Of a stretch of DNA of 64,000 bases, positions 18,739 through 50,720 are shown in pieces; position 1 is the stretch's first letter; every line of letters starts with the position of its first letter. This DNA comes from Felis catus. Taxonomy: Eukaryota. The notes under the pieces were generated by a model that saw only the letters and a program-made list of their open reading frames with translations, made no database searches and had not been told where the DNA came from. The stretch is from assembly GCF_018350175.1 (NCBI RefSeq), contig NC_058373.1, positions 71,300,001 to 71,364,000 on the forward strand. The letters run 5' to 3'. The position numbers and the translations under genes were made by a program.

Positions 18739-21700
18739 TCACCCAGCAGGTTNNNNNNNNNNNNNNNNNNNNNNNNNNNNNNNNNNNNNNNNNNNNNNNN
18801 NNNNNNNNNNNNNNNNNNNNNNNNNNNNNNNNNNNNNNNNNNNNNNNNNNNNNNNNNNNNNNNNNNNNNNNNNNNNNNNNNNNNCATGGATAAGGTGGGA
18901 GAGGGCGTAAGTACGGTGGCTGTAGCCCCCCAGCACCAGAAGCTCTCCCTGCAGCGCAGCCCCTGCGGCCCCCACATGGGGGGAGGGCAAGGGTGCCAGG
19001 TGAGTCCAGCTATCAGTCCTTGGTTCATAGGCCTCGAAGCTCAGCAGGTCCCCAGTCTCACCTAGCCCACCCGCGACATACAACCGTCCACCCAGAGCGG
19101 CCATGACGTGGCCAGCCCGAGGTACCCCCATAGCGCTCAGAAGCACCCCTGGCTTCTCAAGTTTGGGGTCATAGTGCAGCAATGAGGCCAGGTATTGGCC
19201 AGCCCCGCTGCAGCCACCGCTCACGTACAATCGGCCCTCCAGAACCGCAGCTGCGTGGGCAAAGCGTGGTGCTGGAAGAGCAGGTGCCGGCCTAAGGGAG
19301 AACAGGGCACACGATCAGGCAAAAATCCTCTTCAACTCTCCTCCTCCGAGTCCTCTAGGCTTTCCCTGATGTCTAGAAACAGCCCCTTCCCTGCTCACCT
19401 CCAGACATTCAGCTCGGGGTGATAGGTCTCCACAGAGTTGAGGGCGACGCCACCGTTTCGGCCGCCCAGGGCATAAAGTAGTCCGTCCAGCGCCACCAGG
19501 GGAAAAAAGCTCCGAGCCTGGCACAAAGGCGCCATCTCCTCCCAGTCCTCTTGACTGGGGCCCCACCTGGACACAGCGGGACCAAAGAAGAGTGACCCCG
19601 GGCCCCCGTGGCTGGCTGGGCCAACAATTCCCCCTCAGCTGCCCACCTCGGGGCCTGCTATTCCGTGGGGCCCCTACCTGAGAGTCGAAGCCAGGGTGTT
19701 GGAGTGGCTGTAGAAATCCTGTCCCCCACACACGTAGAGCTCACTTCCTGCGAGGCTCGCAGCCCCGTGCCGGAAGCGCCCCGGGGCAGGCAGGGCAGGC
19801 AGCCGCCCCCACTCCACCGTTCGCACCAGTCCCGTGCCGCAGCAGAAGGCGCGCGCCCACCACACTCCTCGCGACGGCTGTCTTATGGCCATGTCTGCTC
19901 TGAGCCCGTCCCCGCCAATCACTACCAGTGCCTGGTCAGGCTCCCTGCGCCGCTCTTGACCTGGAACGGCAGCCTCTACCAGGAGCTGATGCAGCAAGTC
20001 CGCGGTCAGGGGTGGAGGCAGCCCCGCGGCCCGCACCCTCCGCAGCTCTCTGGTGGACATGCGGCCGAAGCGAACACATCGAAGCAGGGCCTTGGCCTCT
20101 GACTCCTGGGTCTCAGGGTTGGCAGCTAACCAACGCCACGCAGCCATGAAGGCCTCGAACTCCTCTTGCACGTGTAGTTCGTCGCTATCCAGGAGCTCAG
20201 CCAGGCAGGCAGCCGGTAGAGAAGGGAAAGTGGGGCACAAAGCCACAGCAGGCAGGTGGGTGAGGAGGTAGTGACGGGCTTTGCTCCAGAGCCTCTCTAA
20301 GCCCGGGGCTTCCGCTATGGGGAACAGGGCCAGGCAACGTGCGGGGCTGAGGCCCCGAGCCAAGGCTCTCTGGCACAGAGCAAGGCAGGAAGAGCTCTGG
20401 TACTGGAGAGCAGCCTGGGCAGCTCTCAGCAGTCCTGGCCACCTTGCCCGCACAACCCCGGAGTAGGCGAAGGAGACGAGGAGTCGCAGGTCCTGGGCAG
20501 AGATAGTGTGCAGAGACACCTCTGTGCCCTGGGATTCCCTCATCCCGCTCAGGAGCATGGCACCAAAGAACTCGCTGCCACAGGCCAGGGCTGCTCGGTG
20601 CACTGCAAGGAGAAGCAGAGGGGAATCCAGAGTGTTGCTGATTGCCAGGCACCCTGCTGATTTCACGTCCCGACTTTGGGCCAACCACCCAAGGCCACAG
20701 GCTAAACCATGGTGTGCATCAGAATACCCTGCGGTGCCTGTTAAACTGTGGGTTTCAGGGACCCACCCCCAGAGATTCTGATTCAGTAGGTCTGGATGGA
20801 GACCCTAGGAATTTGTATTTCAACATTTTCAAGCACCCTGCATGATTCTCATGTTAGTGGCCTGAAGACACTGTGATAAACATTGCTTTAGTTTTTTGAT
20901 CCAGGTCAATTAGAAAAAGAGTCTTGAATGGTCAAGTTGAGTAGATGCTATAGACAGCTTTTGCTAAAAGGGGGCACAAAATAAACTGCAAAGACCAATG
21001 GTGCAAATTACATAGGTCTCTATCATGCACACACAAAAAAGTTCTTTCCTTTACAATCGTAAGAGCCACTGACATCAGCCAGGATTTTACTTAGAAAATG
21101 GTACCACACGGGGTGTTTGGGTGGCTCAGTCAGTTAAGCGCCCCACTTTGGCTCAGGTCATGATCTCACAGTTCATGGATTCGAGCCCTGCATCAGGCTC
21201 TGTGCTGACAGCTCAGAGCTTGAAGTCTGCTTCAGATTCTGGGTCTCCCTCTCTCTCTGGCTCTCCCCTACTCATGCTCTGTCTCTGTCTCTCAAAAATA
21301 AATAAATGTTAAAAATTTTGCTTAAAAAAAAAATGGTACCACACTTAGGAATCTCTGTGACCTAACCTAATCTAACTGCCGTCTCCCACTTAAGATTTCC
21401 CGTGTGCAGCTTTTCTCTGCACACCCCATCTTCATCTCAGTACATTTCAGGTAATCATGACATTTTAAGCTGGAAACCTTCAAAATCATCCAGTTCGATT
21501 GCTCCTTTTAACAGAAGGAAACTGAAAGAGAGGAAGTGATTTATTTTCTATTCCATGTAATGGCTGCCCGAGCAGATCTTCACCCCCCAACGCCACTGAT
21601 GTCAGGCTGCAGTGAGCATACTTGTGTATCGGTACCCTTCTTACCTGCATGGCCCTCACGCCACTGAAACTATTCTGTTACCGGATGCTATTAAATATAA

Positions 21701-22686
21701 ATGTAAATAAATGCTTTCTAATGTAATGCAATTTGAGATACTTGGCATCAGGTATGGAGTATTCTGACTAAACTGTTGAACCTAAATCTATTTTTTTTTT
21801 TATTATTTAAAAAAATTTTTTTTCCAACGTTTATTTATTTTTGGGACAGAGAGAGACAGAGCATGAACAGGGGAGGGGCAGAGAGAGAGGGAGACACAGA
21901 ATCGGAAACAGGCTCCAGGCTCTGAGCCATCAGCCCAGAGCCCGACGCGGGGCTCAAACTCACGGACCGCAAGATCATGACCTGGCTGAAGTCGGACGCT
22001 TAACCGACTGCGCCACCCAGGCGCCCCATTGAACCTAAATCTAATTGAACCCTTAGATCTAAATTCAAATTTATAGGAAATTGAGAAGCTAAAGGAACAA
22101 GCTAAACAAAACCATAATGGAAAACACACACAAATCTAGAAAATGGAGCATTCTATAAGATAACTAATCTTATTTCTTCAGTAAGTCAAGTCATAAAAAA
22201 GGAGAGGACTGTACAAGAGTAAAGGAAGCTTAAAAGACATGTATCTGAGTACAGCATAGTCCTTGATTGACTCCTGGGTTGGATAAGCCAGCTCTACAAG
22301 ACATTTTTTGGACAAGTGGGAAAATTTCAACTTGGACGAGGTGATACTATGGAATTATTGTTAATTTTGTTAGACATGAGTAAGGTATTGTGGTTATATG
22401 TCCTCTTTTAAAGAGACATGTACCCAAGTATTTGTAAGGGAAATGTCACAGATTTACTTTAAACTTCAGTGATAAGTAAAATAAAGAGATGAGACAAATA
22501 TCATAAAATGTTAATTGTTAAGTCTGAGATATGGGTGTTTGAGTGTTCATGTTAATATTTTCTTGGGGTGCCTGGGTGGCTCAGTCAGTGAAGCATCCGA
22601 CTCTTGATTTCAGCTCAGGTCACGATCTCACAGTTTGTGGGTTTGAGCCTTGCGTTGCAGAGTCTGCTTGGGATTTTCTCTCTCTC

Positions 22687-22718
<32 letters not shown>

Positions 22719-22996
22719 CTACTCCTCTGCTTGTGTTCTCTCTCGCTCTCTCAAAATAAATAAACTTAAAAAATATTTTCTTAATTTGCTATGTGTTTGA
22801 AATGCTTCATAATAAAAAAGGGAGAAAATGCTGCCAGAAGTCCTCTTAGGCAGGTACCAGGGCCAAACACCCAGTGAAGCTATGAACATGAGGCTGCTTT
22901 GACCGACTGTGGCACGTTTGCCTCTCTCAAAGGACATGTGATGTTAATGTGGCTTTCCATTGTCTTTTTTTAAAAAATCTTAAATGTTTATTTATT

Positions 22997-23041
<45 letters not shown>

Positions 23042-26000
23042 AGGGGAGGGGCAGAGAAAGAGGGAGACAGAGTATCTGAAGCAGGTTTTGTGTTGAGAGC
23101 AGAAAGCCCAATGTAGGGCTTGAACTGACAAACCATGAGATCATGACCTGAGCTGAAGTCAGATGCTTAACCCCCTGAGTCATCCAGGTGCTCCTCCATT
23201 GTCGTTTTAAGCAGCAGGTAGTGCCTACATGCTTCCCAAATAGTAACTATCAGCGACAGTTTTCAGATACATATTGCCTGAGAAAACCTGCATTCCTTGA
23301 AGCAGGTAAGCCATTTCATTTTCCATGTAATCAACCAACCTATAGCTCAGAGTCACTGTGAAAGGGTCACAACTACTTACATTCTCCCTCCTCCTCATCA
23401 TTATTCCCTAGAATTTTAAGTGACAGGTTTCTACCATTACGTTGGAATGTTTCTTAGGAAAATGAAAGCAAGGATAGAAGTATGTTTAAATTTGAAACCC
23501 TAGTGAGAATTTTATAACTATGAAATTTTATTTTATCTATTTTTAAAATAATTTATTATTGTTTACTTATTTTTGAGACGGACAGAGTGTGAGCAGGGGA
23601 GGGGCAGAGAGAGAGGGAGACATAGAATCCGAAGCAGGCTCCAGGCTTGGAGCTGTCAGCACAGAGCTTGATGTGGGGCTCGAACTCACCACGAGATCAT
23701 GACTTGAGCCAAAGTTGGATGCTTAACCGACTGAGCCACCCAAGTGCCCCATAACTGTGAAATTTTAAATCCCCCCTCCATCTACTACTATCAGAAATAA
23801 TAACAAACACTTTAGAGACCTGCTATGGATTGAATGTTTATGTCTTCCTCCCTCCTTCCTGTGTTGAAGCCCTACTTCCCAGTGTGGTGATATTTGCAGG
23901 TGGAGCCTTTGGGAGGTAATTAGGTATGAGAGTAGAACCCTCCTGAATGGAATTACTGCCCTATATAAGAGATATGACTGAGATAATCTCTCCCTCCACC
24001 AAGTGAAGAGGATACAGTGAGAAGGTGGCCCTCTGCAAGCCAGGAAGAGAGTCCTAATCATAACCTGACCATACCAGAACCCTGATCTTGGACTTCCAGG
24101 CTTCAGAACTGTAAGAAATAAATTTCATCACTGGGTTCTACTCCTGAAACCAATACTACACTGTATGTTAACTAACTTGAATTTAAATAAATACATTTTT
24201 CTAAAAAAGAAATAAATTTCTGTTGTCAAGCCACCCAGTCTATGGTATTTTTGTTAATGCAGTTCAAGTTAAGACAGGGTGCTTTTTCATCTGGGGGTCC
24301 CAGAAACACTATGTGTTCCAGTCATTCTAATGAGCAGTAGCTATGTGACTTTGGACATGTCTTGAAGTCTGATTTCTTTGTCAATAAAGTATAAAAGCTG
24401 AACTAGATACTCTCTAAAGCAATACCTTTTAATTTAACATTTTTATGTGCCTGCATTCCAACTCCATTTGTCAGATCCTGTGTCTTTGGTTTGGTTGCAC
24501 AGGAGGCAATGCATGGCCTAGTGAAAACAGACTGGGCTAGTGAATACTGGGCTTATATCCTGGTTCTCACCAGTTAACATTTCTGAGTTTAATGTTCTTT
24601 CCTTACACCTAGGGATAGTGGCATCCACCTCACTAGTTTTCAGCGAGAATGCAAAGACATGGCATGTGTAAAAATTCCTGGACCCCAGTACCTCACTCAG
24701 TACTGATAGAATCTGAATAACATTTAACTTATTCAACCCTCCTTAGCTTTCCTAGTGATGAGCCTAGTTAACTTCAAAGTGCCAGGTCCTGGTAGCTTTA
24801 AGATTATGGCAAAACAAAACCAGACCTTGCTCGTTAGCTGTAGAACCCGTATCTACCATGGAGTCAAGGACACTTAGGTGAGAGGACACACTGTGAGTTA
24901 TTCCACCATATTCATCTGGCTTTCCTGTGTCCTAAATAGAAGATGCCAAGAAGGGCTTTTGGTTAATTCCTGTTTAAGTCAATCACTTTCTACTTGTTCC
25001 CCTGGCTCAGACTGTACTCATGACACCAGCCAACTGGCTGGAAATTCTTTGGTACTGGCCACAGGGAAAGCCACAGGTTGAAGGGTCAGCTTAAGTCTGC
25101 CTGGTGCTCCTGGGTAAACAACTCAACTGCTCATGCCTTGCTCTCAGTGGGTCAGGAAAGGCACCAAAGGCCAACCCCAAGGAAATTCTGCCTGCAGCTG
25201 TGATCAAAACCACAATGGAAGGGATCAAACCACCTGCAGCTTGCACACACATAAATGAACCTGCAGTAATGTAATGCCAAAAGGCCCTCACCCCGCAGCC
25301 TGCAGCCGCCTGCCTCCAGCTCCAGGTCACACCCGATGCCCTCTTGGTATAGGAGCTCGATGCTCCGCAGGTTCTCCCTCAGCTCCTCTGCTTGGCTGGG
25401 CTGCTTTTCATCTTCCCTGGTGCTTCCAGCCCCTTTGCATCTCCACTGGGCCACGGCCTTCACCCGGGGCGCTCCCAGGGCCTCTGCCACGACCAGCACA
25501 TCTCCCAGCCGTGCAGGGCCCAGCAACCCCTCATAGGCAAATGTCAGTACGGCCTCCCAGGCCCCGGCGGCCACGTCCAGGCTGAGGGGAGGTCGTGGAC
25601 CTCTGCCACCCAGCAGCCTGTCACGGAAGAGGCTGCTAATTGCAGCCAAGATTACCCGATGCACCCCGTATACTCGCCCCTCAACTGACACCTCTTCGTC
25701 CAACAACAACCTCTGCTCCCGCAGCCGCTGTGCCTCCGCGAAAAACTGGCTGGGATGCTCCTCGCTGCGCAGCTCCTCGGGCTCTGCCGCGTCTTGTTCG
25801 TCTTGGTCGTCTTCCTCCTCTTCTTCCTCAAGGGACAAGACTGGAGAGGGAAGGCTCCCTGGGGCCATGGGCCTGGGGACAGGCTCTTCCAAAGGAAAGG
25901 GGGGCAAACTGGTATCCTCATCTGGGGAAGGTGGCCAGGAGGGGGTTCTCGGGTAGGGCAAAGGTAGGTCAAGGCGATCCTTCTGGGCGGGAGCAGAGAC

Positions 26001-26045
26001 GCTCCCAGGGTCCGAAGGACGATGTGAGGAGTCCGAGACGCTCAT
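18739..26045 (-). CDS. KLHL33: Kelch-like protein 33 (BTB-BTB-BACK-Kelch), about 799 aa; coding exons 26045-25292, 20602-19678, 19566-19399, 19291-18739
   Basis: All junctions are GT-AG and in phase (1,2,2); total 2400 nt including the N gap at 18753-18884. BTB motif VHRAALACGSEFF, BACK domain, kelch repeats (LYVCGG, LYALGG, LYVSGG, LYVAGG), ends PAG*. Position between TEP1 and OSGEP matches human. Confidence 0.92.
20700..20890. mobile_element. MER5-like fragment
   Basis: gtgcatcagaataccc...gattctgattcagtaggtctgg. Confidence 0.7.
21110..21332 (+). mobile_element. CAN-SINE
   Basis: SINEC consensus; TSD aaaatggtaccacac. Confidence 0.9.
21791..22027 (-). mobile_element. Young felid CAN-SINE
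   Basis: Near-consensus sequence; TSD ttgaacctaaatct; sits inside an old L1M 3' fragment (about 21740-22820). Confidence 0.92.
22565..22775 (+). mobile_element. CAN-SINE
   Basis: SINEC consensus with (CT)n tract. Confidence 0.88.
22965..23195 (-). mobile_element. CAN-SINE
   Basis: (GA)n tract; TSD tccattgtc. Confidence 0.88.
23540..23750 (-). mobile_element. CAN-SINE
   Basis: Reverse-strand SINEC consensus. Confidence 0.88.
23821..24277 (+). mobile_element. MLT1A-like MaLR solo LTR interrupted by a very short L1 3' tail
   Basis: Starts tgctatggattgaatg, ends aagccacccagtctatggtatttttgttaatgcag...aagaca; insert at 24127-24206 with TSD aagaaataaatttc. Confidence 0.8.
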
Positions 26046-26671
26046 CGTCCAGGTTCGCTGTTTTGCTACAGGTGAACAGAGGGAAGGGGTGGGGGATTCA
26101 GAGCTGGACCCACAGAGGCCGGAGGAACCCCTATCTCCAGCCCGGCGACATGGCAGTCCCTCTCCCTACTTCAAAACCCACTCCCCACCCCCTTCCCAAG
26201 GCTCGAGCAGCTAGGCTATACTGCCCAACACTGGGGTTCACGAAGAGCACCGAAGCGTGCCAGAAGCATGTGTACCGATCCAGTACCCGGGACCGTATGC
26301 CACCCGGCCTGCCCCCGTCCCACCCGGATAGTCACCCTCCCTAGACACCAGCGTTCCTCCTGGCTCTCCCTTGAACCTTCTCCGCTTCGCTTTGGACCCT
26401 GTGACAGAGGAAACTTGCCCCTCAATCGGGTCAGCGGCTCCACCCGACTAATTATAGCCGGCGCTGACCGGCTAGGGGGTTGGGCTCCGGGAGCCCAGAC
26501 TCTGACACCCAATCCCCCGGGCTCCGTCCCGAGATGACCTCCTCCCCCCTTCCACCTGTAGGTCACGTCCTTGTGCTGAGCGAGGCAAATTCAGAAGCCA
26601 GGGAGGATGTGGGGATCGGGTGGAGTGAGCCAGGCCGGAAAGGCTGCGTTCACAAGACGGGTCTGGGGGAG

Positions 26672-26672
<1 letters not shown>

Positions 26673-26702
<30 letters not shown>
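26673..26702 (+). repeat. Poly-G run of about 30 nt
   Basis: Seen directly in the GC-rich KLHL33 5' region. Confidence 0.85.
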
Positions 26703-26703
<1 letters not shown>

Positions 26704-27902
26704 GGGAGAAGAGAGTCTGGACTGCGCAGACCTCCGGAACGTAGGGCCAGAAGAGGGAAGGGAGTGTTTGGAGTCAGTTCTAGGCTTTGACTGTTGGTTT
26801 TTCTGTGCACGATAAAGTTGCCGACCCTGGAGCGAACAAAATACCTACATGAAATGCGTACGTAACGCAGTTGAGTCCACCGAGGGCGAGCGGGAAGGGG
26901 AAGGGATCAGGGCTACGTACCGTAGGTAAACCACCCCCGGCTCGGAATTTCCTCCCTGTCCCCAGGTGGGGTCGGTGGTGAGCTAGAAAGGCCCAACCCT
27001 GTGTGTTCAGGAATTCTGGAGGAGTCTAACCCTCACCTAGATCTCTGGGATGAGGACGGATCAGTGGAAAGTGGGGTGACCGAGGCTGCGGGGACCAAAA
27101 TCCTGGACTGGATGGGCCGGGGCGGTGGTGGGGGGGGGGGGGGGGCGAGTAAGCACTCTCACTTAGGTAGGACACCAACAGCCACTCCCTCTGCCCAGGA
27201 TAACACCTCTTTCCTATCCTGAGACACACCCCGCCCCAAATCCGGGCATTTTTCGCTGCATTTCTAGGTAACCTCATGGGGGAAGAAAGGGAATGGGACA
27301 GCGATGCCACTTCCCTCCCCTCTCCTGGTAAGGTGGGACAGGCCCAGGGGGCTGCTGGGGGTGGATTCTCTGGCCTATAAAAAGATTGGTCCAGCCTGGA
27401 TGTATTGGCCCGACAAGCTGACTTAACCGGGGAGCAAACGATTATTCCTTAGGACTCTGTGAAAGGGTGGTATTCACGTGAGGGAGGGGTGAGACTTGAC
27501 CGGCTCCTCTTTCCTCTCCCCTCAGGTGGCACGCACTTCCTTATTTCACGCAGCCTGAGTCCAAAGCTTGGCGTTTCCATCAGGATCATCTTCACTTTCG
27601 CCAATGCCTTAGTCATGGCTGTGCACACGGTGGGCTTCACAGAAGTCCTTTCAAACCTGCTCAGGACAATGCCCATCCCCTCCCTTGATATGCCCTTTTC
27701 CCAAGTTGGCTCACCACCAGCCTGCACTTTTTGTGACTCCAGCCTGGGCAAGTCATTTTACTGAGGGCTGATGCGGGGGTGGGAGGGAGGGGAGTGTGGG
27801 TGATGGGTATTGAAGAGGGCATCTTTTGGGATGAGCACTGGGTGTTGTATGGAAACCAATTTGACAATAAATTTCATATATTAAAAAAAAAATGAATCAG
27901 AT

Positions 27903-28108
27903 GGGGGAGCCTGGGTGGTTCAGTCGGCTGAGTGTCCCACTTCGGCTCAGGTCATGAGCTCACACTCCTGAGTTTCCGCCCGGTATTGGCTCCGTGCTGA
28001 TAGCTCAGAGCCTGGAGCCTGCTTCAGATTCCGTGTCTCCCTCTCTCTCTGCCCTCCCCTTGCTCAAGCTCTCTGTAAAATGAATAAATGTTAATACTTT
28101 TTTTTAAA
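27903..28108 (+). mobile_element. CAN-SINE in a pseudogene intron
   Basis: SINEC consensus; TSD aatcagatgg. Confidence 0.85.
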
Positions 28109-28385
28109 ATCAGATGGAAGCATCAAATCAGTCAATAAAGTCTCTCTGACCCACTACCTCTACGTTCTGCCCTTCCAGGAGCATGGGTGCAGCTGCCTAA
28201 GGTGGATCCAGAAAATGAGTTGTTTGGTGGGCATGGTGACCATGACCGTCCCTCTGTGCCTGGCAATGGCTAGTGTGGAATGGATGTCTAAGGCAGGGGG
28301 CAGGGAGTCAAGGTAGGGGTAAGAACTTTGGGGATGGGGGAGACAGCTGGACATATCTGGAAGAGGCCAGCGTGGGGAGATGTGG

Positions 28386-28387
<2 letters not shown>

Positions 28388-28424
<37 letters not shown>
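28388..28424. repeat. (GT)n microsatellite
   Basis: About 18 GT units. Confidence 0.95.
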
Positions 28425-28425
<1 letters not shown>

Positions 28426-30492
28426 ATGCACTTGTGTGCACACACGCTCCTGCTGGCAGAGCAGATTCTCAGGGACCCAACCTGAAACTGGACAAATTTG
28501 CTGGAATAGACTCCATATACCAACTCTTTAAGGGAAAAACAAGGACGTATTCTAGGGATCTGTTGGGACAAGCACTAGACAAGACTACCAGATGAGAAAT
28601 GCCATTTCCTGTTCCCAGATAGTTACAATCTTGAGAGCCATCCCTCTGGCAAGGGAAGGGACACTTTGTAGTTTGCGGCAAGAAGGAAAAGGACACCCAT
28701 TTACCCTTTTAGCTAGACTCCGTTATGGGAAGAGGCTCATGGGAAAGGGAACTGGAGGATGGGAAAGGAGAGTGAGGAGGAGGAGGAGTTATTCCTCCCC
28801 TTACATTTGTACTTCTCCTCCCCCTCTCCCCCATGGTATTCCCAGCCCAAATGATCTTAATGGTCTTCCTGATCCTCTCTTTTATCGACTATCTGCCACA
28901 AACCCCCCATTCCTCCCCACAAACCCCAGCCTACAAGCCACTTGTTTCTTTAGGTGAACTCAATGGGAAGCTGGCTGAGAAATGTATTAAGGGGAAGGCA
29001 TGCCTCTGAATGTCACCTCCCCTTGGAGCAGGGTACGTCATTAGCCCAAGCCTCCTCAGAAAAGACATACATTCTGTATGACATTTGCAAGTTGACCATC
29101 ACACTCAGAAACCTATAAGTCCCTGGGCTGGCCAGTTTACAATCTTGCCTTATTTGTCCCAGCCTAACCTAAGTCATTGACACTAAACTGGGTAAAGGGG
29201 TAATGATCTTGGCTGAATGAAGGCAAGCTAGGAGGTGCCCCTCAAAAACTTAATTTTTCTCTGTTCTTTTACATAAATAGTATTTTCTTTGAAAATATGG
29301 TCCCATGGCGGTGAGGTCCAGAGGGTAGTTGCTTTGGCATGTTTTCCATCTTCTCCTCAGCCACTGGGGTACTCACAGAGACCAGGATCTCTGGAGACCT
29401 CAAGGTGAGAACCATGTTCAGGCACGGAGCACACTTGTTATCTCCCCGCCTTGTCTTGCCACTAATGGTTCAACTTCTGTTTCCGGGACCCTGCTACAGC
29501 TATCCTTGCCTTCCTGTGGACATACTTTCCTACCTGTGCATTTCTGCCACAATTGGCAAGGCCCTCTACTCCAGCCTTCTGTGCAGAATGACCTAGAGCC
29601 CTGGTTTCTGCCTGAGGGCCTAGGGCATAATAGGTAATGAAATGGCAAGAGGCTTCACCAATCACATCAAGAGTAGATTACACATAGGCAATCTCACATC
29701 TCACCTTCCTTCACCATTTCTCCCCATCCCTCATTTCACTGACAAATTGTATGATGTTCTTTGGTTATCAAATTTGGTATTTCCACCCCCCCTCCCCCAA
29801 CTTACACACAAACTTCCATTCCCCTCTTTGGCACTGGTGGTACCTAGATAGTCCTACTGCTTTGGGATGGGGTTCTCTCCCCACGAAGAATGTGTGTTCC
29901 CAATCTCATTTCCAGGCTCCTGTATGACTGGAGAGGCTCCAGGAAATAGGACTGGCATGGGTGTGCAGAATGGGAGCTGCCTGGGGCCAGAGTGTCAATA
30001 TGGCTAGGATTTCTGCAGTTGTCAAGGGCAAGGGTCTTGCCTGTATGGGCTCCCTAATCACTACTAGGTGAGTGAACAGAGGGGCAAGATCAGTGAGATA
30101 AACTTTACCTAGCCCATTTTCTGGCATAGAGGAGATGCTCAAAAACCAATAATGACTTAAGGGGATTCATGTGGGTGGGGTAAAACCTTCAAAGAATAGG
30201 ATAAAACTTAATATGCCCAGCAACCTCTAGGAAAGGTAGGTGAAAATATGAGTGGAATGCATTGCTTCTGAAATGTATTGATTTCTGCCTCTGCCTGCTC
30301 TTCTTCTCAAGCCATGAGCATGGTGTCTGCCTTTATCCCCCTGAAGTCTATTGGAATCTTCGGTGCCATTCTGTCCTCTGCCCTTTCCTGTTTTGTTTCA
30401 ACCCCCAAAGTCTTCTAGGTTAGTTGGTATCTTACCAAGAGGCTTGGGGGAAAAGGAGAAAATGCAATAGAGTCTAGGGCCATCCTAAGAGT

Positions 30493-30720
30493 ATTTTTTT
30501 TTTTAATATTTTTTTTTCAACGTTTATTTATTTTGGGGACAGAGAGAGACAGAGCATGAACGGGGGAGGGGCAGAGAGAGAGTGAGACACAGAATCAGAA
30601 ACAGGCTCCAGGCTCTGGGCCATCAGCCCAGAGCCTGACGCGGGGCTGAAACTCACGGACCGCGAGATCGTGACCTGGCTGAAGTCGGACGCTTAACCGA
30701 CTGTGCCACCCAGGCGCCCC
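30493..30720 (-). mobile_element. Young felid CAN-SINE in a pseudogene intron
   Basis: Near-consensus sequence; TSD taagagtat. Confidence 0.92.
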
Positions 30721-33700
30721 CTTAAGAGTATATTTTTGAGGAGGAGTACAAGAGGGCTCCGTCTCAGCAACCAGGAGTTAGATGATGATTTAGGGAGGTG
30801 GAGAGGACTGTGGTTGGTTGGTGTTTAGGAGACAATCCAAGCTCACATAGCAAAATTCAAAGTCTCCTGTATATCAAGGCGAAGTTTAGGGAGGGTATCA
30901 ATCTTCCATCTGCCTCCTGTTTTCCCTCCCCACATTACCAGGAATCTCACCACACTCTACTCTCATCCTTTCTTCATGTTAAGACCTGTAAGCTCCCTCA
31001 ACTCTTTCCTCTGTGCTCCTCACTTGCTCCTGCCTCCCTATAGGAGTAGGGGCTATCATTCCCCCTCTTCCTGGAACCATCCCCCAATGACCACCATGCC
31101 TTCTTATAGTGGTTGTGCCAGAATAAACTGTACCCAGTAGTTGGCTTTTTTAGGAAAAGCTATGGCAGGAGCCATGAACCTATGTGAGGCTATCTGCTCA
31201 CGTTCTGTATTGCTATAGCTTTCATCCTTACTGGTGAGTACTTCTTCTCCACCCTCACACAGGGCTTCATTAATCACCTTTCCCCTCATGGCCCTCACTG
31301 CCCTACCTCTGACTTTTAGGGCTTGACCCTAAAGCCTCTTTTCTAGATCTCTAGTCCTGAAAGTGGAAGTCTGTTAACCTGGTGATGGTATGCATGGAAG
31401 TTGGAGGGGGGAATAGGGAATAGGGAGCATGGGGGAAGGAAGCCAGAATATGATGATGTCTTTGTCTCTCTAGACCTCAATCCCATGACTCATTTGGAGA
31501 CCAACCTCCTGACCTTGCATCTCTTCCAAAGCTGATGTGACCACCACCCTATCATCTCCAACTTTTTCCTTTGCTCCTATCCCCTTGTCAACTTTGGTAG
31601 TTTTCACGCCTCCCTTAACTGGGTGCCTGGTTAGTATGGGCACCTATTAGTATGCGGTTATACTAACAGGGTTGGGAGGACCTGAGAGAGAGGAGCATCC
31701 TTGGGGTGCAAGAGTGGGTGGTACTGAGGCTAGGACAAAGGATTGGCTGCATTTACTCAACCCTGCAGTCTAGTGCCCTTCTTTTCACAAGTACAGCCCC
31801 TGGCTCACCCTCCTGGGCTTTCTGCTCTGCCTATCACATTCCTTTCTCACCTGGTGGGCAGCAGTCACTGCTATGTTGCTTATCCTTTGGCTACTGCTCT
31901 TTATATTCTACAAGAAACCTGGTGATTAAGTGGGCAGGTGGGTAAGGAAGTGAGGGAGTGTGATATGGCACGAGGTTGACGCCCATAAGAAGCCCAGAAC
32001 TACCAACAGTAACTCATTTCCTTTCCTACCTGAGAAATGAGGCCCCACCTCTAATCATTCTGCACCACCCCTTCCGAAGCAGATGTGAACTGGAGCTTTT
32101 CAGTCCAGGTGAGCATCTATCACATGGCACTATCCTATTCAGTGAACTTGACCAACGTGCAGGACCATGTCAAGAACTTCTGGTGAGATTGAACACTGGT
32201 GTCCTCCAGAATGGATCTTACCTGCGTGAGTTCAGATGGTACAGCGTTTATAATTTTTAAAATTAATTGCCAATATTTAACATGCATCTGGGAATTTGGG
32301 GCCTCCATCCCACATGACACATTCTGCTGGAGCTGAGTAGCTGCTCTCCCATGGGATAGGGCACTGATTCTTCAGTTTGCCACAGTTCCCACCTGGTCCA
32401 CTTTATTCTTTGATACTATATAATGACTGGTTCTTAAAGGCTTCTGAGATTTCAATCCCTGCTCTAGCCATAAAAGGAAACCAGCTTCCCCAAATCTAGG
32501 AGGGGCCGTGAGGAAAAGGAAGGAAACAGAATTCTAGCAGGGTAGATGGACTAAGCCTCCCTGAGGAAGGATGCTCCATGGCAGAGCAGATGCCACAGGA
32601 ATCACAGTTACCAGCTTCCCTTGTGCTCTGAGATGGAAAAGTCTAATACTCTTGGTTTCTCTCTAAAATCCCCCAGCAGGTGGGGAAGAGCTGATCTCTA
32701 TTCCTTGCTGAAACTGGAATTCTTTTTTCTACAGCTAAAAGGCTTTTGAAGACTTAGTAGCCTTATACCAGCTACAACAGCTACCACCAAAGGGGGAACC
32801 TGAAATGTACTTTTCTCAACACTCCTGTTCCTTCAGGCTACACCTCTGAGCAGGACTTATAGGCAAATAAAAAGCAGGTATATAGGAACAGGGCCAGCAA
32901 ATGGGGAAATAGTCTCAGAGTAGGAACTGACCATGGTGCTCTCCTGTCCTCTGCTCATTCTTCCTAATCATGTAGTCAGAGTAGCACATATCTTCGTGAA
33001 GTCCTGTGGCAATATTCCCAGGATGCTGCCCTCATAGACATGTGAGTCTGGGGAAATTCCAAACCACAGAGCAAAGGCCCCAAGGGTAGGGCTGATCTGA
33101 TGATTAGGTAAACTGAGGAACAGGTTCCCTTCCTCACACTGCCTTTTGTTAACAGGAGCCTACCTTTGATCCCTCAGTCACCCTGCCTTGGGGCCCTATA
33201 CATGACTTGATTGGATGCTATCCAGTGGCCTGACAACCCCCCACTGCCTTCATCTGTGGAAATCAGCAGGACACAATGATCTTGTATACTGTCAATAAGA
33301 GACTCAGGAGAGACTGAGCTAGGAAGAGGACTTCAAAAGTTAGGACCCAAGCAGCCATGATTTTAGTCTCTTGGTTCTATAAACTGTGAGGCTATCTTGG
33401 GAAGCCTCAGCCAAGATCTCAAAGCTCCCTAAGGAAAGAAGTCTCCTAATAAGCAGTACCAGCTGGGTCTACAGTGCTAAATGTCTTCCCTCTAGGATCC
33501 ACTCCATCCTATAATAGTAATAAAAACTTATAAATAAATACCCAAGGCTACTGTATAACATACTTGATGCCTATTTATAAAATTAACTCCCCAAGCCTAG
33601 AGGGCACAGATCATTCCTGTACTCAAATATATTCAAGGAGAGCAATTTATCTTTCTACTTGTGTCCCACTCTATTTTCCACTCTCGAATTTCNNNNNNNN

Positions 33701-33821
33701 NNNNNNNNNNNNNNNNNNNNNNNNNNNNNNNNNNNNNNNNNNNNNNNNNNNNNNNNNNNNNNNNNNNNNNNNNNNNNNNNNNNNNNNNNNNNNNNNNNNN
33801 NNNNNNNNNNNNNNNNNNNNN

Positions 33822-33968
33822 GAGAGAGAGGGAGACACAGAATCGGAAGCAGGCTCCAGGCTCTGAGCCATCAGCCCAGAGCCTGACGCGGGGCTCGAAC
33901 TCACAGACCACGAGATCGTGACCTGGCTGAAGTCGGACGCTTAACCGACTGCGCCACCCAGGCGCCCC
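33822..33968 (-). mobile_element. CAN-SINE (tail lies in the N gap)
   Basis: Near-consensus 5' portion adjoining the gap at 33693-33821. Confidence 0.9.
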
Positions 33969-34404
33969 TAAATGTCCATGTTTTAGTGTATTTTCAACCC
34001 TCTATGGGTCTTTGTCCATGAAAATGTCTTTATCAGCACTTTCTACTTAGTAAGTAACTGAAAACGTATTCTTTTCCTAAGCGCACATAATCCCAATTCT
34101 TTTTATCTTTTGGCCCTAGTCTTACATTTATAGTCTTTGATTATCTCTTTGGTTTACCTCTGCATCAATTTATTCATTCATTCAGCAAATGCTGAGTGTC
34201 CACCCTATTCTAAGTACTGGGAGATGACATGGCAATGAATCAAACAAGATAAAAATCCCTTCCGCTCAGGGAATTTGTATTCTAACAGAAGGAGTCAAAC
34301 AACAAACATAAATAAAACTATTAGATTAGAAGGCGGTAAGTGCTAATAATAAAGCAGAAAAAAGGAGGGAAACAAAGGCAAAACATCATAATGCAAGACT
34401 TAGA

Positions 34405-37400
34405 GAACTCAGTGACTTATAAAAAGGAATAAAATTGGAATCATAGGAGTCCCAGAAGATGAAGAGAGAGAAAAAGGGGGAGAAGGTTTATGTGAGCAAA
34501 TTATAGCAGAAAACTTTCCTAATCTGGGGAAGGACACAGACATCAAAATCCAAGAAGCACAGAGAACTCTCAGTAGATTCAATGAAAACCAACCATCACC
34601 AAGGCATACTGTAGTCAAATTCACAAAATACACAGATGATGAAAGAATTATGAAAGCAACAAGGGTAAAAAGTCCTTAACCTATAAGGGAAGACAGATCA
34701 GGTTTGCAGCAGACCTATCCACAGCAACTTGGCAGGCCAGAAAGGGGTGGCAGGATATTTTCAATGTGCTGAATCAGAAAAATATGCAGCCAAGAATTCT
34801 TTATCCAGCAAGGCTGCCATTCAAAATAGAAGGAGAGATAAAGCATTTTCCAGACAAATGAAAATTAACCATCCCTGCAAGAAATTTTAAGGGGAACCCT
34901 TTGAGTGGAGAAGACAAAACAAAACAAAAAAGACCAAAACCAACAAAGACTAAGGATGAGTACTCACTCTAAATGTCAATAGACTAAACACTTCAATCAA
35001 AAGATATAGGATATCAGAATGGATAAGAAAACAAGACCCATCTATATGCTGCTTACAAGAGATTCATTTTAGACACAAAGACACCAGCAGATTGAAAGTA
35101 AGGGGATGGAGAACCATCTATCATGCTATTGGTGGTCAAAAGAAAGCTGAAGTAGCCATACTTAGACAAACTAGATTTTAAAATAAAGACTATGACAAGA
35201 GATGAATAAGGGCATTATATTGTAATTAAGGGGTCTATCCCCCAAGAAGATCTAACAATTATAAATATATATGCTCCCAATGTGGAAGAACCCAAATATA
35301 TAAATCAATTAACCACAAACATAAAGAAACTCATTGATAATAATACCGTAACAGTAGGGGACAGATGGACAGATCATCCAAGCAGATATGTACAAGGAAA
35401 CAATAGTTCTGAATGACACACTGGACCAGATGGACTTAACAGATATATTCAGAACATTTCATCCTAAAGCAGCAGAATACACATTCTTCTTGAGTGTAGA
35501 TGGAACATTCTTCAGAACAGATCAGATACTGGGTCACAAATCAGTCTTTGACAGGTACAAAAAGATCAAGATCATACCTTGCATATTTTCAGACCACAAC
35601 GCTATGACTCGAGAAACCAACCACAAGAAAAGTTTGGAAAGACCATGAATACTTGGAGATTAAAGAACATCCTACTAAAGAATGAATGGGTGAACCAAGA
35701 AATTAAAGAGGAAATTAAAAAGTACATGGAAACCAATGAAAATAAAAACACAATCAAAACTAAGAGGCAACTGACAGAATGGGAGAAGATATTTGCAAAC
35801 AACATACCAGATGAAGGGTTAGTATCCAAAATCTATAAAGAACTTATCAAACTCAACACCCAAAAAATAATCCAGTGAAGAAGTGGGCAAAAGACATGAA
35901 TATACACTTCTCCAAGGAAGACATCCAGATGGCCAACTGACACGTGAAAAAATGCTCAACATCACTCATCATCAGGGAAATACAAATCAAAACCACAATG
36001 AGATACCATTTCACACCTGTTAATGTTAATGGCTAACATTAACAACTCAGGCAACAACAGATGTTGGCAAGGATGTGGAGAAAGAGGAACCCTTTTGCAC
36101 TGAATGCAGACTGGTGCAGCCACTCTAGAAAACAGTATGGAGGTTCTTCAAAAAATTAAAAATACAACTACCCTACGACCCAGCAATTGCACTACTAAAT
36201 ATATATCTAAGGATACAGGTATGCTGTTTCAGAGGCGCACGTGCACCCCAGTGTTTATAGCAGCACTATCAACAATAGCCAAAGTATGGAAAGAGCCCAA
36301 ATATCCATCAATGGATGAATGGGTAAAGAAGACGTGGTATACATATACAATGGAGTATTACTCGGCAATCAAAAAGAATGAAATCTTGCAACTACGTGGA
36401 TGGAACCAGAGGGTGTTATGCTAAGCAAAATTATTCAGAGAAAGACAAATATCATGACTTCACTCATATGAGGACTTTAAAATATAAAACAGATGAACAT
36501 AAGGAAAGGGAAGCAAAAATAATATAGAAACTGGGAGGGGGACAAAACATAAGAGACTTTTAAATATGCAGAACAGAGAGTTACTGGAGAGGTTGTGGGA
36601 GGGGGGATAGGCGAAATGGGTAAGGGGCATTAAGGAATCTACTCCTGAAATCATTGTTGCAATATATGCTAACTAACTTGGATGTAAATTAAAAAATAAG
36701 TTAAAAAAACTTAGGGAAAAAAAAAAAGAAAAACACAACAACCAAAAACCTCTGGGATGCAGCAAAGCAGTCATAAGAGAGGAGTATGTAGCAATCCAGA
36801 CCTTCCTAAAGAAAGAAGAAAGGTCACAAATATACAACCTAACCTTACACCTAGAAGAGGTGGAAAAAGAACAGCAAATAAGGCCCAAAACTAGCAAATA
36901 AGGGAAATAATAAAGATTAGAACAGAAACCAATGCTATTGAAATCAAAAGAAAACAAAAAAATAAGCAAAAACAAACAAACAAACAGTAGAGCAGATCAA
37001 TGAAACCAGGAGCTGATTCTTTGAAAGAATTAACAAAATTGATAAACCCCTAGCCAGATTAATCAAAAAGAAAATGGAAAGGACCCAAATAAATAAAATG
37101 ATGAATGNNNNNNNNNNNNNNNNNNNNNNNNNNNNNNNNNNNNNNNNNNNNNNNNNNNNNNNNNNNNNNNNNNNNNNNNNNNNNNNNNNNNNNNNNNNNN
37201 NNNNNNNNNNNNNNNNNNNNNNNNNNNNNNNNNNNNNNNNAAAACAGGAAGAAACAGAATTTGGAACAAACCCATAACTAGTAAAGAAATTGAATCACCA
37301 ATCAAAAATCTCCTAACAAACAAGAGTCCAAGGCCAGATGGCTTTCCAGGGGAATTGTACCAAACACTTAAAGAAGGATTAACTCCTATTCTTTTGAAGC

Positions 37401-39930
37401 TATTCCAAAAAATAGAAATGGAAGGAAAACTTCCAAAGTCATTCTACAAGGCTAGCATTACCTTGAGTCCAAATCAGACAAAGACTCCACTAAAAAGGAG
37501 AATTACAGACCAATTTCCCTGATGAACATGGATGCAAAAATCTCAATAAGGCACTAGCAAACCAGATCCAACAATGCATTAAAAGAATTATTCACCACGA
37601 TCAAGTGGGATTTATTCCTGGGATACAGGGCTGATTCAATATCTGCAAACCAATCAATGTGATACATCACATTAATAAAAGAAAGGACAAGAATCACATG
37701 ATCCTCTCAAGAGATGCAGAGAAAGCATTTGACAAAATACAGCATCCTTTCTTGATAAAAACCCTCAAGAAAGTAGGGATAGAAGGATCATACCTCAAGA
37801 TCATACAGGCCATATATTAAAGACCCACTGCTAATATCATCCTCAATGGGGAAAAACGGAGAGCTTTCCCCCCAAGGTCAGTAACACGACAAGGATGTCC
37901 ACTCTCACCACTGTTATTCAACATAGAATTGGAAGTCCTAACCTCAGCAATCAGACAACGCAAAGAAATAAAAGCCATCCAAATCAGCCAGGAGGAGGTC
38001 AAATTTTCACTCTTTGCAGACAACGTGATACTCTGTGGAAAACCAAAAAGACTCCCCTAAAAAGCTGCTAGAGCTGATACATTCAGCAAAGTTTCAGGAT
38101 ATAAAATCAATGTACAGAAATTGGTTGCATTTCTATATACCAATAATAAAGCAGCAGGAAGAGAAATCAAGGAATCGATCCCGTTTACAATTTCATTGAA
38201 AACCATAAAATACCTAGGAATAAACCAAACCAGAAAGGTGAGAAGTCTATACACTGAAAACTATTGAAAGTTTATGAAAGAAATTGAAGAAGACACACTA
38301 AAAAAATGGAAATAAACATTCCATCCTCATGGATTAGAGGAACAACTATTGTTAAAATGCCGATACCACCCAAAGCAATCTACATATTCAATACAATTCC
38401 TATCAAAACAACACCAGCATTTTTCACAGAGCTAGAACAAACAATCCTAAAATTTGTGAAACCAGAAAAGACCCCGAATAGCCAAAGCAATCCTGAAAAA
38501 GAAAACCAAAGCTGGAGGCATCACAATTCCAGACTGCAAGCTGTATTATAAAGTTGTCATCATCAAGACAGTATGGTACTAGCACAAGAACAGACACATA
38601 GATCAAACGTATGGCCAACTAATCTTTGACAAAGCAGGAAAGAATATCCAATGGAAAAAAGACAGTCTCTTCAGCAAACGGTGTTGGGAAAACTGGACAG
38701 AGACATGAAGAAGAATGAACCTGAACCACTCTCTTAAACCATACACAAAAATAAACTCAAAATGGATGAAAGACCTAAATGTAACACAGGATGTAAGACA
38801 TCATAATCCTGGAGGAGAAAACAGGCAACAACCTCTTTGATCTTTGGTGCAGCAATTTTTTACTTGACACAAGGGAAACAAAAGCAAAAGTGAACTATTG
38901 GGACATCATCAAAATAAAAAGCTTCTGCACAGTGAAGGAAACAATGAGTAAAACTAAAAGGCAACCAACAGCATGGGAGAAGATATTTGTAAATGACATA
39001 GCAGATAAAGAGTTATTATCCAAAATCTATAAAGAACTTATCAAACTCAACACCCAAAAAAGAANNNNNNNNNNNNNNNNNNNNNNNNNNNNNNNNNNNN
39101 NNNNNNNNNNNNNNNNNNNNNNNNNNNNNNNNNNNNNNNNNNNNNNNNNNNNNNNNNNNNNNNNNNNNNNNNNNNNNNNNNNNNNNNNNNNNNNNNNNNN
39201 NNNNNNNNNNNNNNNNNNNNNNNNNNNNNNNNNNNNNNAACAAGGATGTTGGCAAGGATGTGGAGAAAGAGGAACCCTTTTGCACTGCTGGTGGGAATAC
39301 AAACTGGTGGAGCCACTCTGGAAAAACAGTAGGGAGGTCCCTCAAAAAATTAAAAATGCAGCTACCTATGACCCAGCAATTGTACTACTAGGTATTTATC
39401 CAAAGGATACAGGAGTGCTGATTCAAAGGGGCACATGCACCCCAATGTTTATAGCAGCACTATCAACAATAGCCTAAGTATGGAAAGAGCCCAAATGTCC
39501 ATCAATAGATGAATGGATAAAGAAGATATTACTCGGATAATATATATGGAATGGAATATTACTTGGCAATCAAAAAGAATGAAATCTTGCCATTTGCAAC
39601 AACGTGGACAGAACTAGAGTGTAGTACGTTAAAGGAAACAAGTCAGAGAAAGTCAAATACGAGATGATTTCACTCAAATATGGAATTTAAGATACAAAAC
39701 AGATGAACATAGGGAAGGGAAGCAAAAATAAAACAAGGAGGGAGACAAACCATAAGAGACTCTTAAATACATATAACAAACTGAGGGCTGCTGGTGGGGT
39801 TTTGAGTGGGCAGATGGGCTAAAGGGCAAGGGGCATTAAGGAGGAGATTTGGGATAAGCACTGGGTGTTATATGTAAGTGATGAATCACTAAATTCTATT
39901 CCTGAAATTAAAGAAATAAAAATAAAAAAT
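34405..39930 (+). mobile_element. Inactive carnivore L1 (ORF1 3' part, ORF2, 3' UTR)
   Basis: ORF1 motifs (IIGVPE, ENFPNL); endonuclease (LDQMDLTDIFRTFHP, SDHN); RT region ([16 protein letters not shown]); multiple stops; two N gaps. Confidence 0.95.
35753..36730 (+). mobile_element. Second 5'-truncated L1 nested in ORF2 of the host L1
   Basis: Sequence jumps from the end of the endonuclease region to the ORF2 C-terminus, 3' UTR and poly-A, then the host ORF2 resumes (aacctctgggatgcagcaaa); TSD aaaaacacaa. Confidence 0.85.
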
Positions 39931-41311
39931 AAAGAAGGTGGTTAAGTACTATAAAGATAAATAACAGGGAAGGGGGATAGAAAGTGCTGGAGGGGTGGAA
40001 TTTTAAGTACGGTTGTCAGAAAGACCTCACTAAAAGAAGAAAAGTTGACCAAAGACGTAAGATTATGGGACTGATGGAGCAAGCTATAGCTGAGGGAAGA
40101 GCTTTCTAGGCAGAGAAAGCAACAAGTATGAAGACCTTGAGGGACTGGTACACCTTCAGTGTTGAAGGAAAAACAAAAAGGCCAATGTTGCTGGAGCAGG
40201 GTGAACAAGGTGAGTAGCAGGAAATGAGGTCAAAGCAGTAAGCGGGGAGAGGAGGGCAGATCCTGGAGGGTCTCACTTGCCTTTAAAGGACTCTAGTTTT
40301 TACTCCAATATAGGAAGACACAGAGGGTTTTGAGCAGAAGAGTCACATAACCTGGCTTCTATGTTAACACTATTCAGTCTGGCTGCTGTGTTAAAAATGG
40401 ACTGTAAGTGGGCAGTTGTGGAAGCAGATACACCAGCGACTGCAGAAGTCTTGGAGATAGAGAATTCTGGCTTGCTCTAGGGTGGAAGCAGTGGAAGTAA
40501 GAAGAAACAGGATTCTGGATATATTCTGAAGTTAAAGTCTATGTGATTTGATGAACCGGAGATGAAAAAGAGGTGTCAGGTAACATCAGGGTGCTTTGAC
40601 ATGGACAATTATTAGGACGGGGTTGTCATTCACTGAAATAGGGAAGATGGCAGCAGTTAAAGGGGAGCAAAAAAGTCCAGCGTTTTGTATGTTAAATTTG
40701 AGATATCTATTAGGTATCCAAGTTGAAATGCCAATTGGCAGCTAGATATTCAGAACAGACTTCCAGTTTGGAGCTAAAAATTGGGAGTCATCCACACTGA
40801 AATGGTTTTAATGTGTAAGACTGGATGAGCTCACTGCAAGTATGTGTGTAAATAAATACAGAAGCGGTCCAAGGACTGGATTCTAGAGTTACTAGGTTGT
40901 AGAAATGAGGAGAAACCAGCAAAGGAAACAAAGAGCAGTCAGTAAACTAGAAGGCACACCAGAGAACATGTCCTAAAGCCAAGTAAAGAAGGGCTTTCAA
41001 AGAGGGAGTGTCAAATGTTGCTATGCGGGATGAAGGTGAATACGCCATCAGATATGTGAAGTCATTGGTGACCTTGATAAGAACAGTCTTGGTGGAGCGA
41101 GCTTAACAAGGAATTGATTGTGAGGGAGTAGAAACAACTCTTTTAAGATGTTTTGCTATAAAACGGAACAGAAAAACGGGAAGCAACTAAAAGGTGAAAT
41201 GGGGTCAAGAGGCGTTCATGTATTTGTAAGATGAGGAAAATGACAGCATATTTGTGTACTGAGAGGAAGATCTAGGAAAGAAAGGCAAATATTGACTCTA
41301 AAAAAATGAGA

Positions 41312-43810: not shown

Positions 43811-50720
<6,910 letters not shown>

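Follow-up and report, generated by a model that had tools for sequence, protein, structure and literature searches.

SLC12A10 (NCC2/NCC-beta), a relative of the Na-Cl cotransporter (NCC) gene SLC12A3, is intact in horse and platypus and has been pseudogenised or deleted in most mammals, according to Motoshima et al. (2023), whose findings we take from PMC11145369 and PMC11381001. PMC11145369 describes the mammalian SLC12A10 pseudogenes as lying at the same chromosomal locus, without naming it. Here, we analysed a stretch of 64,000 nucleotides (nt) of Felis catus (NCBI RefSeq assembly GCF_018350175.1, contig NC_058373.1, positions 71,300,001 to 71,364,000 of the forward strand), which we call the window and in which positions are counted from its first letter. 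We confirmed that 27526-33298 on the + strand, between KLHL33 and OSGEP, holds the broken, intron-containing remains of SLC12A10. A first-pass annotation, made from the letters of the window alone, had proposed such a fossil gene, intact in horse and lost in most mammals; as far as the two citing papers report it, this distribution is indeed the published one. Since SLC12A10 loss has already been published for most mammals, the cat relic is an instance of a known phenomenon.

With horse SLC12A10 the cat relic shares the exon order and a loop-exon sequence that is strongly unlike SLC12A3. The horse gene is reported to be intact and expressed, whereas the cat copy carries six in-frame stops and at least seven frameshifts and has lost exons. 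In other mammals, relics of the same kind have been described as SLC12A10 pseudogenes (Motoshima et al. 2023, Physiol Genomics 55:113, conveyed by PMC11145369 and PMC11381001), while the individual lesions listed below are specific to the cat genome. SLC12A3 has its fold, its exon layout and the histidine of transmembrane segment 3 (TM3; H234, potassium-independent transport) in common with the relic, but it is a living gene at another locus and is only 54-57% identical to the cat sequence.

The first block of the relic already carries a clear signature of the SLC12 family. Translated from 27525-27641 (39 residues), it matched the solved human SLC12A3 at E = 5e-11 and SLC12A2 at E = 4e-8, and the K-Cl cotransporters at ~0.1 only. 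Among 1.84 billion cluster representatives it matched 204 SLC12 proteins at E <= 1e-3; the matches of this search were mostly single-exon fragments, with no SLC12A10 among them. When the window was searched with ~270 SLC12 proteins (tblastn), matches were obtained on the + strand over 27.5-32.2 kb in the order of SLC12A3 residues 199, 260, 283, 333, 392, 447, 483, 530, 560 and 610, and the collinear matches cover residues ~197-640 and 962-1022 of full-length SLC12A3. With horse SLC12A10 as the query, the same program found 29915-30064 (E = 2.4e-20), 31110-31238 (E = 8e-17), 27522-27692 (E = 4.7e-13), 30308-30415 (E = 1.3e-11) and 32079-32180 (E = 8e-10). In composition-preserving shuffles, the real score was never reached (0/1000) for 14 of 15 in-frame pieces, and for 28848-28895 it was reached in 2/1000. 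Pfam AA_permease gave weak single-exon matches (E = 7e-4 and 4e-3), which stay below the gathering score, as is to be expected of fragments that span 36-39 residues. The first exon retains an NCC-type histidine in the motif AVHTVGF, which aligns with human AMHTVGF. This TM3 histidine (human NCC H234) marks NCC, while other cation-chloride cotransporters have a tyrosine there (PMC10043231), and the motif points to a relic of the NCC-type subgroup (SLC12A3/SLC12A10).

Within 27526-33298 on the + strand, 14 exon-like blocks follow one another in protein order, 13 of them well supported and one weak. They are listed here with the residues identical to horse SLC12A10, unless another reference is given:

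27526 to 27665, + strand: exon A, TM3 region; 140 nt, frame open, 30/47 identical; acceptor AG intact, donor AC in place of GT.
28179 to 28293, + strand: exon B; 9/12 and 15/24 identical, ~35-38% to SLC12A3; frame 0, then 2 (28187-28222), then 0 again from 28224; donor non-canonical.
28846 to 28953, + strand: exon C; 8/16 and 11/13 identical; frame 0 until 28895 and frame 2 from 28913, with the frameshift inside a short duplicated CCACAAACCCC stretch (28896-28912).
29281 to 29404, + strand: exon D; 25/30 identical in 29315-29404; interrupted in frame by TGA 29312-29314, one codon deleted; splice sites intact (acceptor AG, donor GT).
29487 to 29561, + strand: exon E; 10/12 and 9/11 identical to horse residues 222-250, 0/1000 shuffles; read in two frames, with 15 nt deleted in frame and the frame shifted by 1 nt near 29520; splice sites altered (acceptor GG, donor GC).
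29916 to 30067, + strand: exon F, large extracellular loop; 37/50 (74%) identical, E = 2.4e-20, the strongest single-block match of the relic; stops TAG 30005-30007 and TAG 30065-30067 (final codon); donor GTGAGT intact.
30311 to 30418, + strand: exon G; 28/35 identical; open apart from the final codon, TAG 30416-30418; acceptor AA, donor GT intact.
31110 to 31235, + strand: exon H; 30/43 identical, E = 8e-17; in-frame TGA at 31185-31187; acceptor AG and donor GT intact.
31532 to 31631, + strand: exon I; 19/23 identical; frameshift near 31551; donor GT intact.
31774 to 31921, + strand: exon J, TM11-12; 50 codons open; 25/48 identical to teleost SLC12A3 and 23/49 to rattlesnake SLC12A3, 0/1000 shuffles; phase mismatched with exon I; donor GT intact.
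32083 to 32182, + strand: exon K; 100 nt, open, in phase with exon J; 25/33 identical; AG and GT intact.
32739 to 32846, + strand: candidate exon of the C-terminal domain (KAFEDLVALYQLQQLPP), weak; collinear best match to SLC12A3 residues ~893-923.
32977 to 33040, + strand: penultimate exon (LREVLWQYSQDAALI); SLC12A3 residues 962-976; donor GTGAGT intact.
33156 to 33298, + strand: last exon; TGA at 33208-33210, frameshifts near 33234 and near 33275; ancestral stop at 33296-33298, directly after ..YCQ.

The peptides quoted in the first-pass annotation were recovered where it had placed them and in the frames it gave (three-frame read of 26000-34500), its ordered series of + strand SLC12 blocks stood up to the collinearity and shuffling analyses, and the blocks for which sizes were measured came to 140 nt (the first) and 100 nt (32083-32182). 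Weakly supported is the candidate C-terminal-domain exon, its 32735 block: the best match is collinear, but shuffles reached the score in 4/300 trials with one reference and in 44 to 113/300 with three others. The remnants 32977-33039 and 33234-33287 were significant (0/300 shuffles reaching the score). The frame order of exon B (0, 2, 0) indicates two frameshifting deletions, and the TGA at 28955 counts as a stop of exon C only if this exon once ran further.

How severe is the damage? A base-by-base check gave six in-frame stops, at TGA 29312, TAG 30005, TAG 30065, TAG 30416, TGA 31185 and TGA 33208. At least seven frameshifts were found, of which exon B (28187 and 28223) and the last exon have two each and exons C, E and I one each, and the phase mismatch between exons I and J comes in addition to these. 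Splice signals, which were said to bound most of the blocks, are intact at many junctions, among them the acceptors of exons A, B, C, D, H, J and K and the donors of exons D, F, G, H, I, J and K, with changes at the donors of A (AC), B and E (GC) and the acceptors of E (GG) and G (AA). Exons for the N-terminus, TM1 and TM2 gave noise only when horse, lemur and SLC12A3 queries were run at relaxed thresholds against 20000-44000 and the whole window. A weak match at 24123-24203 was rejected as a 5' exon; it is AT-rich, resembles an interspersed repeat and lies inside KLHL33. Likewise, no convincing C-terminal-domain exon for SLC12A3 residues ~642-890 was found in 32183-32738, and the ~790 nt from exon K to the penultimate exon hold the weak 32739-32846 block only, while the final two exons of the gene are preserved as remnants. 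The relic is dead and cannot make a transporter; with disabling lesions in an in-place, intron-containing copy, it is a pseudogene.

Upstream of the penultimate exon, an open segment at 32368-32496 on the + strand (..LYNDWFLKASEISIPALAIKGNQ..) bears a weak likeness to the SLC12A3 last-exon motif (1/200 shuffles). This likeness may be due to chance after many segments were tried, or the segment may be a displaced fragment.

The assignment to SLC12A10 is carried by the comparison with the horse protein. As horse reference we used a protein of 459 residues (P0304), listed in NCBI nr as 'solute carrier family 12 member 10 [Equus caballus]'. It was found, together with the teleost SLC12A10 references (two teleost 'member 10, tandem duplicate 1'), through a search with the cobra paralogue; a search with a 630-residue teleost "SLC12A3-like" protein returned teleost SLC12A3 only, and one with the mouse-lemur stub described below returned six proteins. 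As further candidate references, P0038 and P0028 proved in cluster look-ups to be true SLC12A3, and P0040 and P0130 were set aside as unnamed and no nearer to the cat relic. The horse sequence does not contain the TM11-12 exon, which is present in the cat at 31774-31921, and ends shortly after ..DHVKNFR; this isoform is short or partial and does not represent the full transporter.

Over 338 placed residues the cat relic is 72.8% identical to horse SLC12A10, compared with the 54-57% found for SLC12A3 of teleosts and reptiles, 46% for a partial sperm-whale SLC12A3 model and ~40% for NKCC. Horse SLC12A10 was the best match on all cat exons compared except the conserved first one (27525-27665), where it ties with SLC12A3 at 30/47. 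The identities of the other pieces are as follows:

28187 to 28295: 62-75% to horse SLC12A10, 35-42% to SLC12A3.
28913 to 28951: 85% to horse SLC12A10, 8-46% to SLC12A3.
29915 to 30064, variable extracellular loop: 74% to horse SLC12A10, 40-44% to SLC12A3.
31110 to 31238: 70% to horse SLC12A10, 52-62% to SLC12A3.
31551 to 31619: 83% to horse SLC12A10, ~70% to SLC12A3.
32079 to 32180: 74% to horse SLC12A10, 54-59% to SLC12A3.

The same relationship emerged from a maximum-likelihood tree of 40 rows x 358 columns, in which the cat pieces had been set into the alignment columns by a script, stops being coded as X and frameshifts as gaps. Cat and horse SLC12A10 form a pair (support 96/82), an "SLC12A3-like" stub of the mouse lemur Microcebus murinus (P0283) joins them (98/97), and the NCC clade that contains this group is supported at 100/99. 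Within that clade, the cat-horse-lemur group, teleost slc12a10, teleost SLC12A3 and tetrapod SLC12A3 form a polytomy. Placing the cat sequence with mammalian SLC12A3, apart from horse, was rejected in the approximately unbiased (AU) test (delta lnL, the log-likelihood difference, 59; p = 0.0003). Judged by identity and by the tree, the closest relative of the cat relic is, by a wide margin, the named SLC12A10 of horse, to the exclusion of SLC12A3, in agreement with the identity first proposed. The first-pass annotation had also named a clustering of the exons inside mammalian SLC12A3 as the outcome that would speak against it; for the cat sequence alone such a clustering is rejected, while a position of the whole cat-horse-lemur clade as sister to mammalian SLC12A3 is not (p = 0.39).

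Two further observations concern the sequences around this group. The stub is one of two NCBI models of Microcebus murinus, of 159 and 167 residues (P0044, XP_012608226, and P0283, XP_020141485), which are named 'SLC12A3-like' and represent the same relic. The stub shares the residues VQLP.(V/M)DPEN(E/D)L and IIF, which are specific to cat and horse, and the models read into an intron that is still cat-like (..SKAGIGKSRWG, compared with ..SKAGGRESR*G in the cat). Two genes of the NCC type are present in the cobra Naja naja, P0285 (A0A8C6XDN0) and P0028 (A0A8C6XJA4), which are 76% identical and both SLC12A3 in UniRef; P0285 and the tortoise sequence P0289 (Gopherus evgoodei) group with tetrapod SLC12A3 (86/89) and not with horse SLC12A10.

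We therefore consider it very probable that the locus is a unitary pseudogene of SLC12A10 (NCC2/NCC-beta) which still occupies its ancestral position between KLHL33 and OSGEP, and the orthologue of the intact horse gene. The match to horse, the flanking genes and the lesions together support the earlier description as an SLC12A10 decayed in place. Several points weigh against this interpretation. The AU test did not reject the cat-horse-lemur clade as sister to mammalian SLC12A3, a result explained by the mammalian SLC12A3 sequences being partial only, nor did it reject a grouping of this clade with teleost slc12a10 (p = 0.24) or with the second NCC gene of reptiles (p = 0.25). The raw identity of the cat relic to teleost slc12a10 (~50%) does not exceed that to SLC12A3 (~55%). 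The sole horse SLC12A10 sequence compared is the 459-residue isoform, and SLC12A3 was the sole reference for the last exons, in place of an SLC12A10 C-terminal domain. Moreover, the analysis read one window of 64 kb, in which an intact copy elsewhere in the genome would not show. Given the polytomy and the AU results, the orthology of mammalian SLC12A10 with fish slc12a10 rests on the literature, from which we take it, and not on our tree. It is unlikely, in our judgement, that mammalian SLC12A10 (the horse gene with the cat and lemur relics) represents a third NCC lineage, distinct from both SLC12A3 and the second reptile NCC gene (P0285, P0289); the gene between KLHL33 and OSGEP would then not be orthologous in a simple way to that of reptiles or fish.

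Could the cat-horse-lemur lineage instead have arisen by a duplication of SLC12A3 within mammals or tetrapods, the copy having landed next to KLHL33 and being SLC12A10 in horse in name only? The AU result of p = 0.39 would suit such an origin, as would the TM1 of the lemur stub, which is almost identical to SLC12A3, and the position of the second reptile NCC gene, which in the best tree falls with tetrapod SLC12A3 and not with the mammalian clade. Against it, horse SLC12A10 is equidistant from the SLC12A3 of mammals, of reptiles and of teleosts (98 to 102/163 identical), whereas SLC12A3 orthologues share 130 to 139/163 among themselves, and of six sites derived in mammalian SLC12A3 horse SLC12A10 is ancestral at 5 and derived at 0. 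In addition, published synteny and phylogeny, as reported in PMC11145369 and PMC11381001, join the horse gene to fish slc12a10, and we regard such a duplicate as very unlikely. A processed retrocopy of SLC12A3 or SLC12A10 is refuted by the exon-intron layout: the 13 spacers between the blocks are intron-like, measure 134 to 691 nt and have AG/GT bounds in many cases, with the protein order kept over 5.8 kb. The claim in the first-pass annotation that the relic is not a retrocopy is thereby supported. Chance matches are equally refuted, by E values down to 2e-20 and by 14 of 15 pieces never equalled in 1000 shuffles; no supporting point was found for either of these explanations.

It is also conceivable that the locus is not inert, either yielding a spliced non-coding transcript or using a short open part. 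Exons J and K are open with both splice sites, exon H likewise apart from one stop, and much of the stretch is present in RNA-labelled runs. These runs are metatranscriptomes that contain 62 to 93% of the words of the stretch, introns included, which looks like host DNA or unspliced carry-over. The 5' exons, including a recognisable promoter-proximal exon, were not found, and the in-frame stops are spread over several exons. We attach only a minimal probability to such a residual function and retain the interpretation of a dead SLC12A10.

The flanks of the relic in the cat window consist of TEP1, KLHL33, OSGEP and APEX1, and domain-bearing open reading frames (ORFs) on both sides place it between KLHL33 and OSGEP, as originally described. 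For synteny with other mammals we rely on the description of their pseudogenes in PMC11145369 as sharing one locus. In the literature searched, outside the full text of Motoshima et al. (2023), no paper was found that pairs slc12a10 with OSGEP, KLHL33, APEX1 or TEP1. The neighbouring features are:

512 to 1219, - strand: N-terminal exon of TEP1.
18739 to 26045, - strand: KLHL33, the upstream neighbour; three ORFs with domain matches.
18739 to 19230, - strand: Kelch ORF of KLHL33.
19674 to 20684, - strand: ORF of KLHL33 with BTB_KLHL33 and BACK domains.
25152 to 26045, - strand: BTB-domain ORF in the KLHL33 region; 297 codons, BTB E = 1.8e-7.
27988 to 28072, strand not assigned: interspersed repeat resembling a short interspersed nuclear element (SINE), in the intron between exons A and B.
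43893 to 49798, - strand: OSGEP, the downstream neighbour; exons with a TsaD domain, E = 4e-28.
52230 to 52718, + strand: APEX1-type Exo_endo_phos ORF.

The BTB ORF at 25152-26045, situated upstream of the BTB_KLHL33 and BACK ORF at a distance of 4.5 kb, is probably a 5' exon of a long form of KLHL33; the gap from this 5' ORF to exon A measures 1.5 kb only. In the G+C-rich stretch between the KLHL33 5' ORF and the relic we observed long poly-G runs (26651-26722 and 27096-27149). The repeat at 27988-28072 has relatives at 30551-30720, in the intron between exons G and H, and at 33822-33968, downstream of the relic. Between the relic and OSGEP, 34000-40000 is A-rich, with a G+C content of 0.34-0.36, an AT skew of ~0.3 and three runs of N, and has the look of a long interspersed nuclear element (LINE) in sense orientation. 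Runs of N were kept as they stand in the window.

How might this relic have arisen? Bony vertebrates would have SLC12A10 as their second Na-Cl cotransporter gene, ancestrally situated between KLHL33 and OSGEP. We propose that selection no longer kept it in the lineage leading to the felid and that it decayed as a consequence. In the course of this decay, the N-terminal, TM1 and TM2 exons and most of the C-terminal domain would have been lost, while the surviving exons would have gained stops, frameshifts and broken splice sites and SINEs would have entered the introns. The end branch of the cat sequence measures 0.37 changes per site and that of horse 0.087, from which, as a rough estimate, an old loss with a long period without constraint may be suggested. 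Because horse retains the gene while lemur and cat have relics, we infer that the losses in the primate and carnivore lineages were independent, which agrees with the published picture.

In summary, the window contains an SLC12A10 that has decayed between its neighbours. As most mammals are already known from the literature to have lost this gene, the cat relic opens no new question. The exon-by-exon map of its decay is an aid to annotation, which can avoid the relic being called a gene or "SLC12A3-like", as has happened in the mouse lemur, and it is of use in dating the independent losses of SLC12A10 across mammals. Judged from the 64-kb window, the felid, like most mammals, would be left with one working Na-Cl cotransporter gene.

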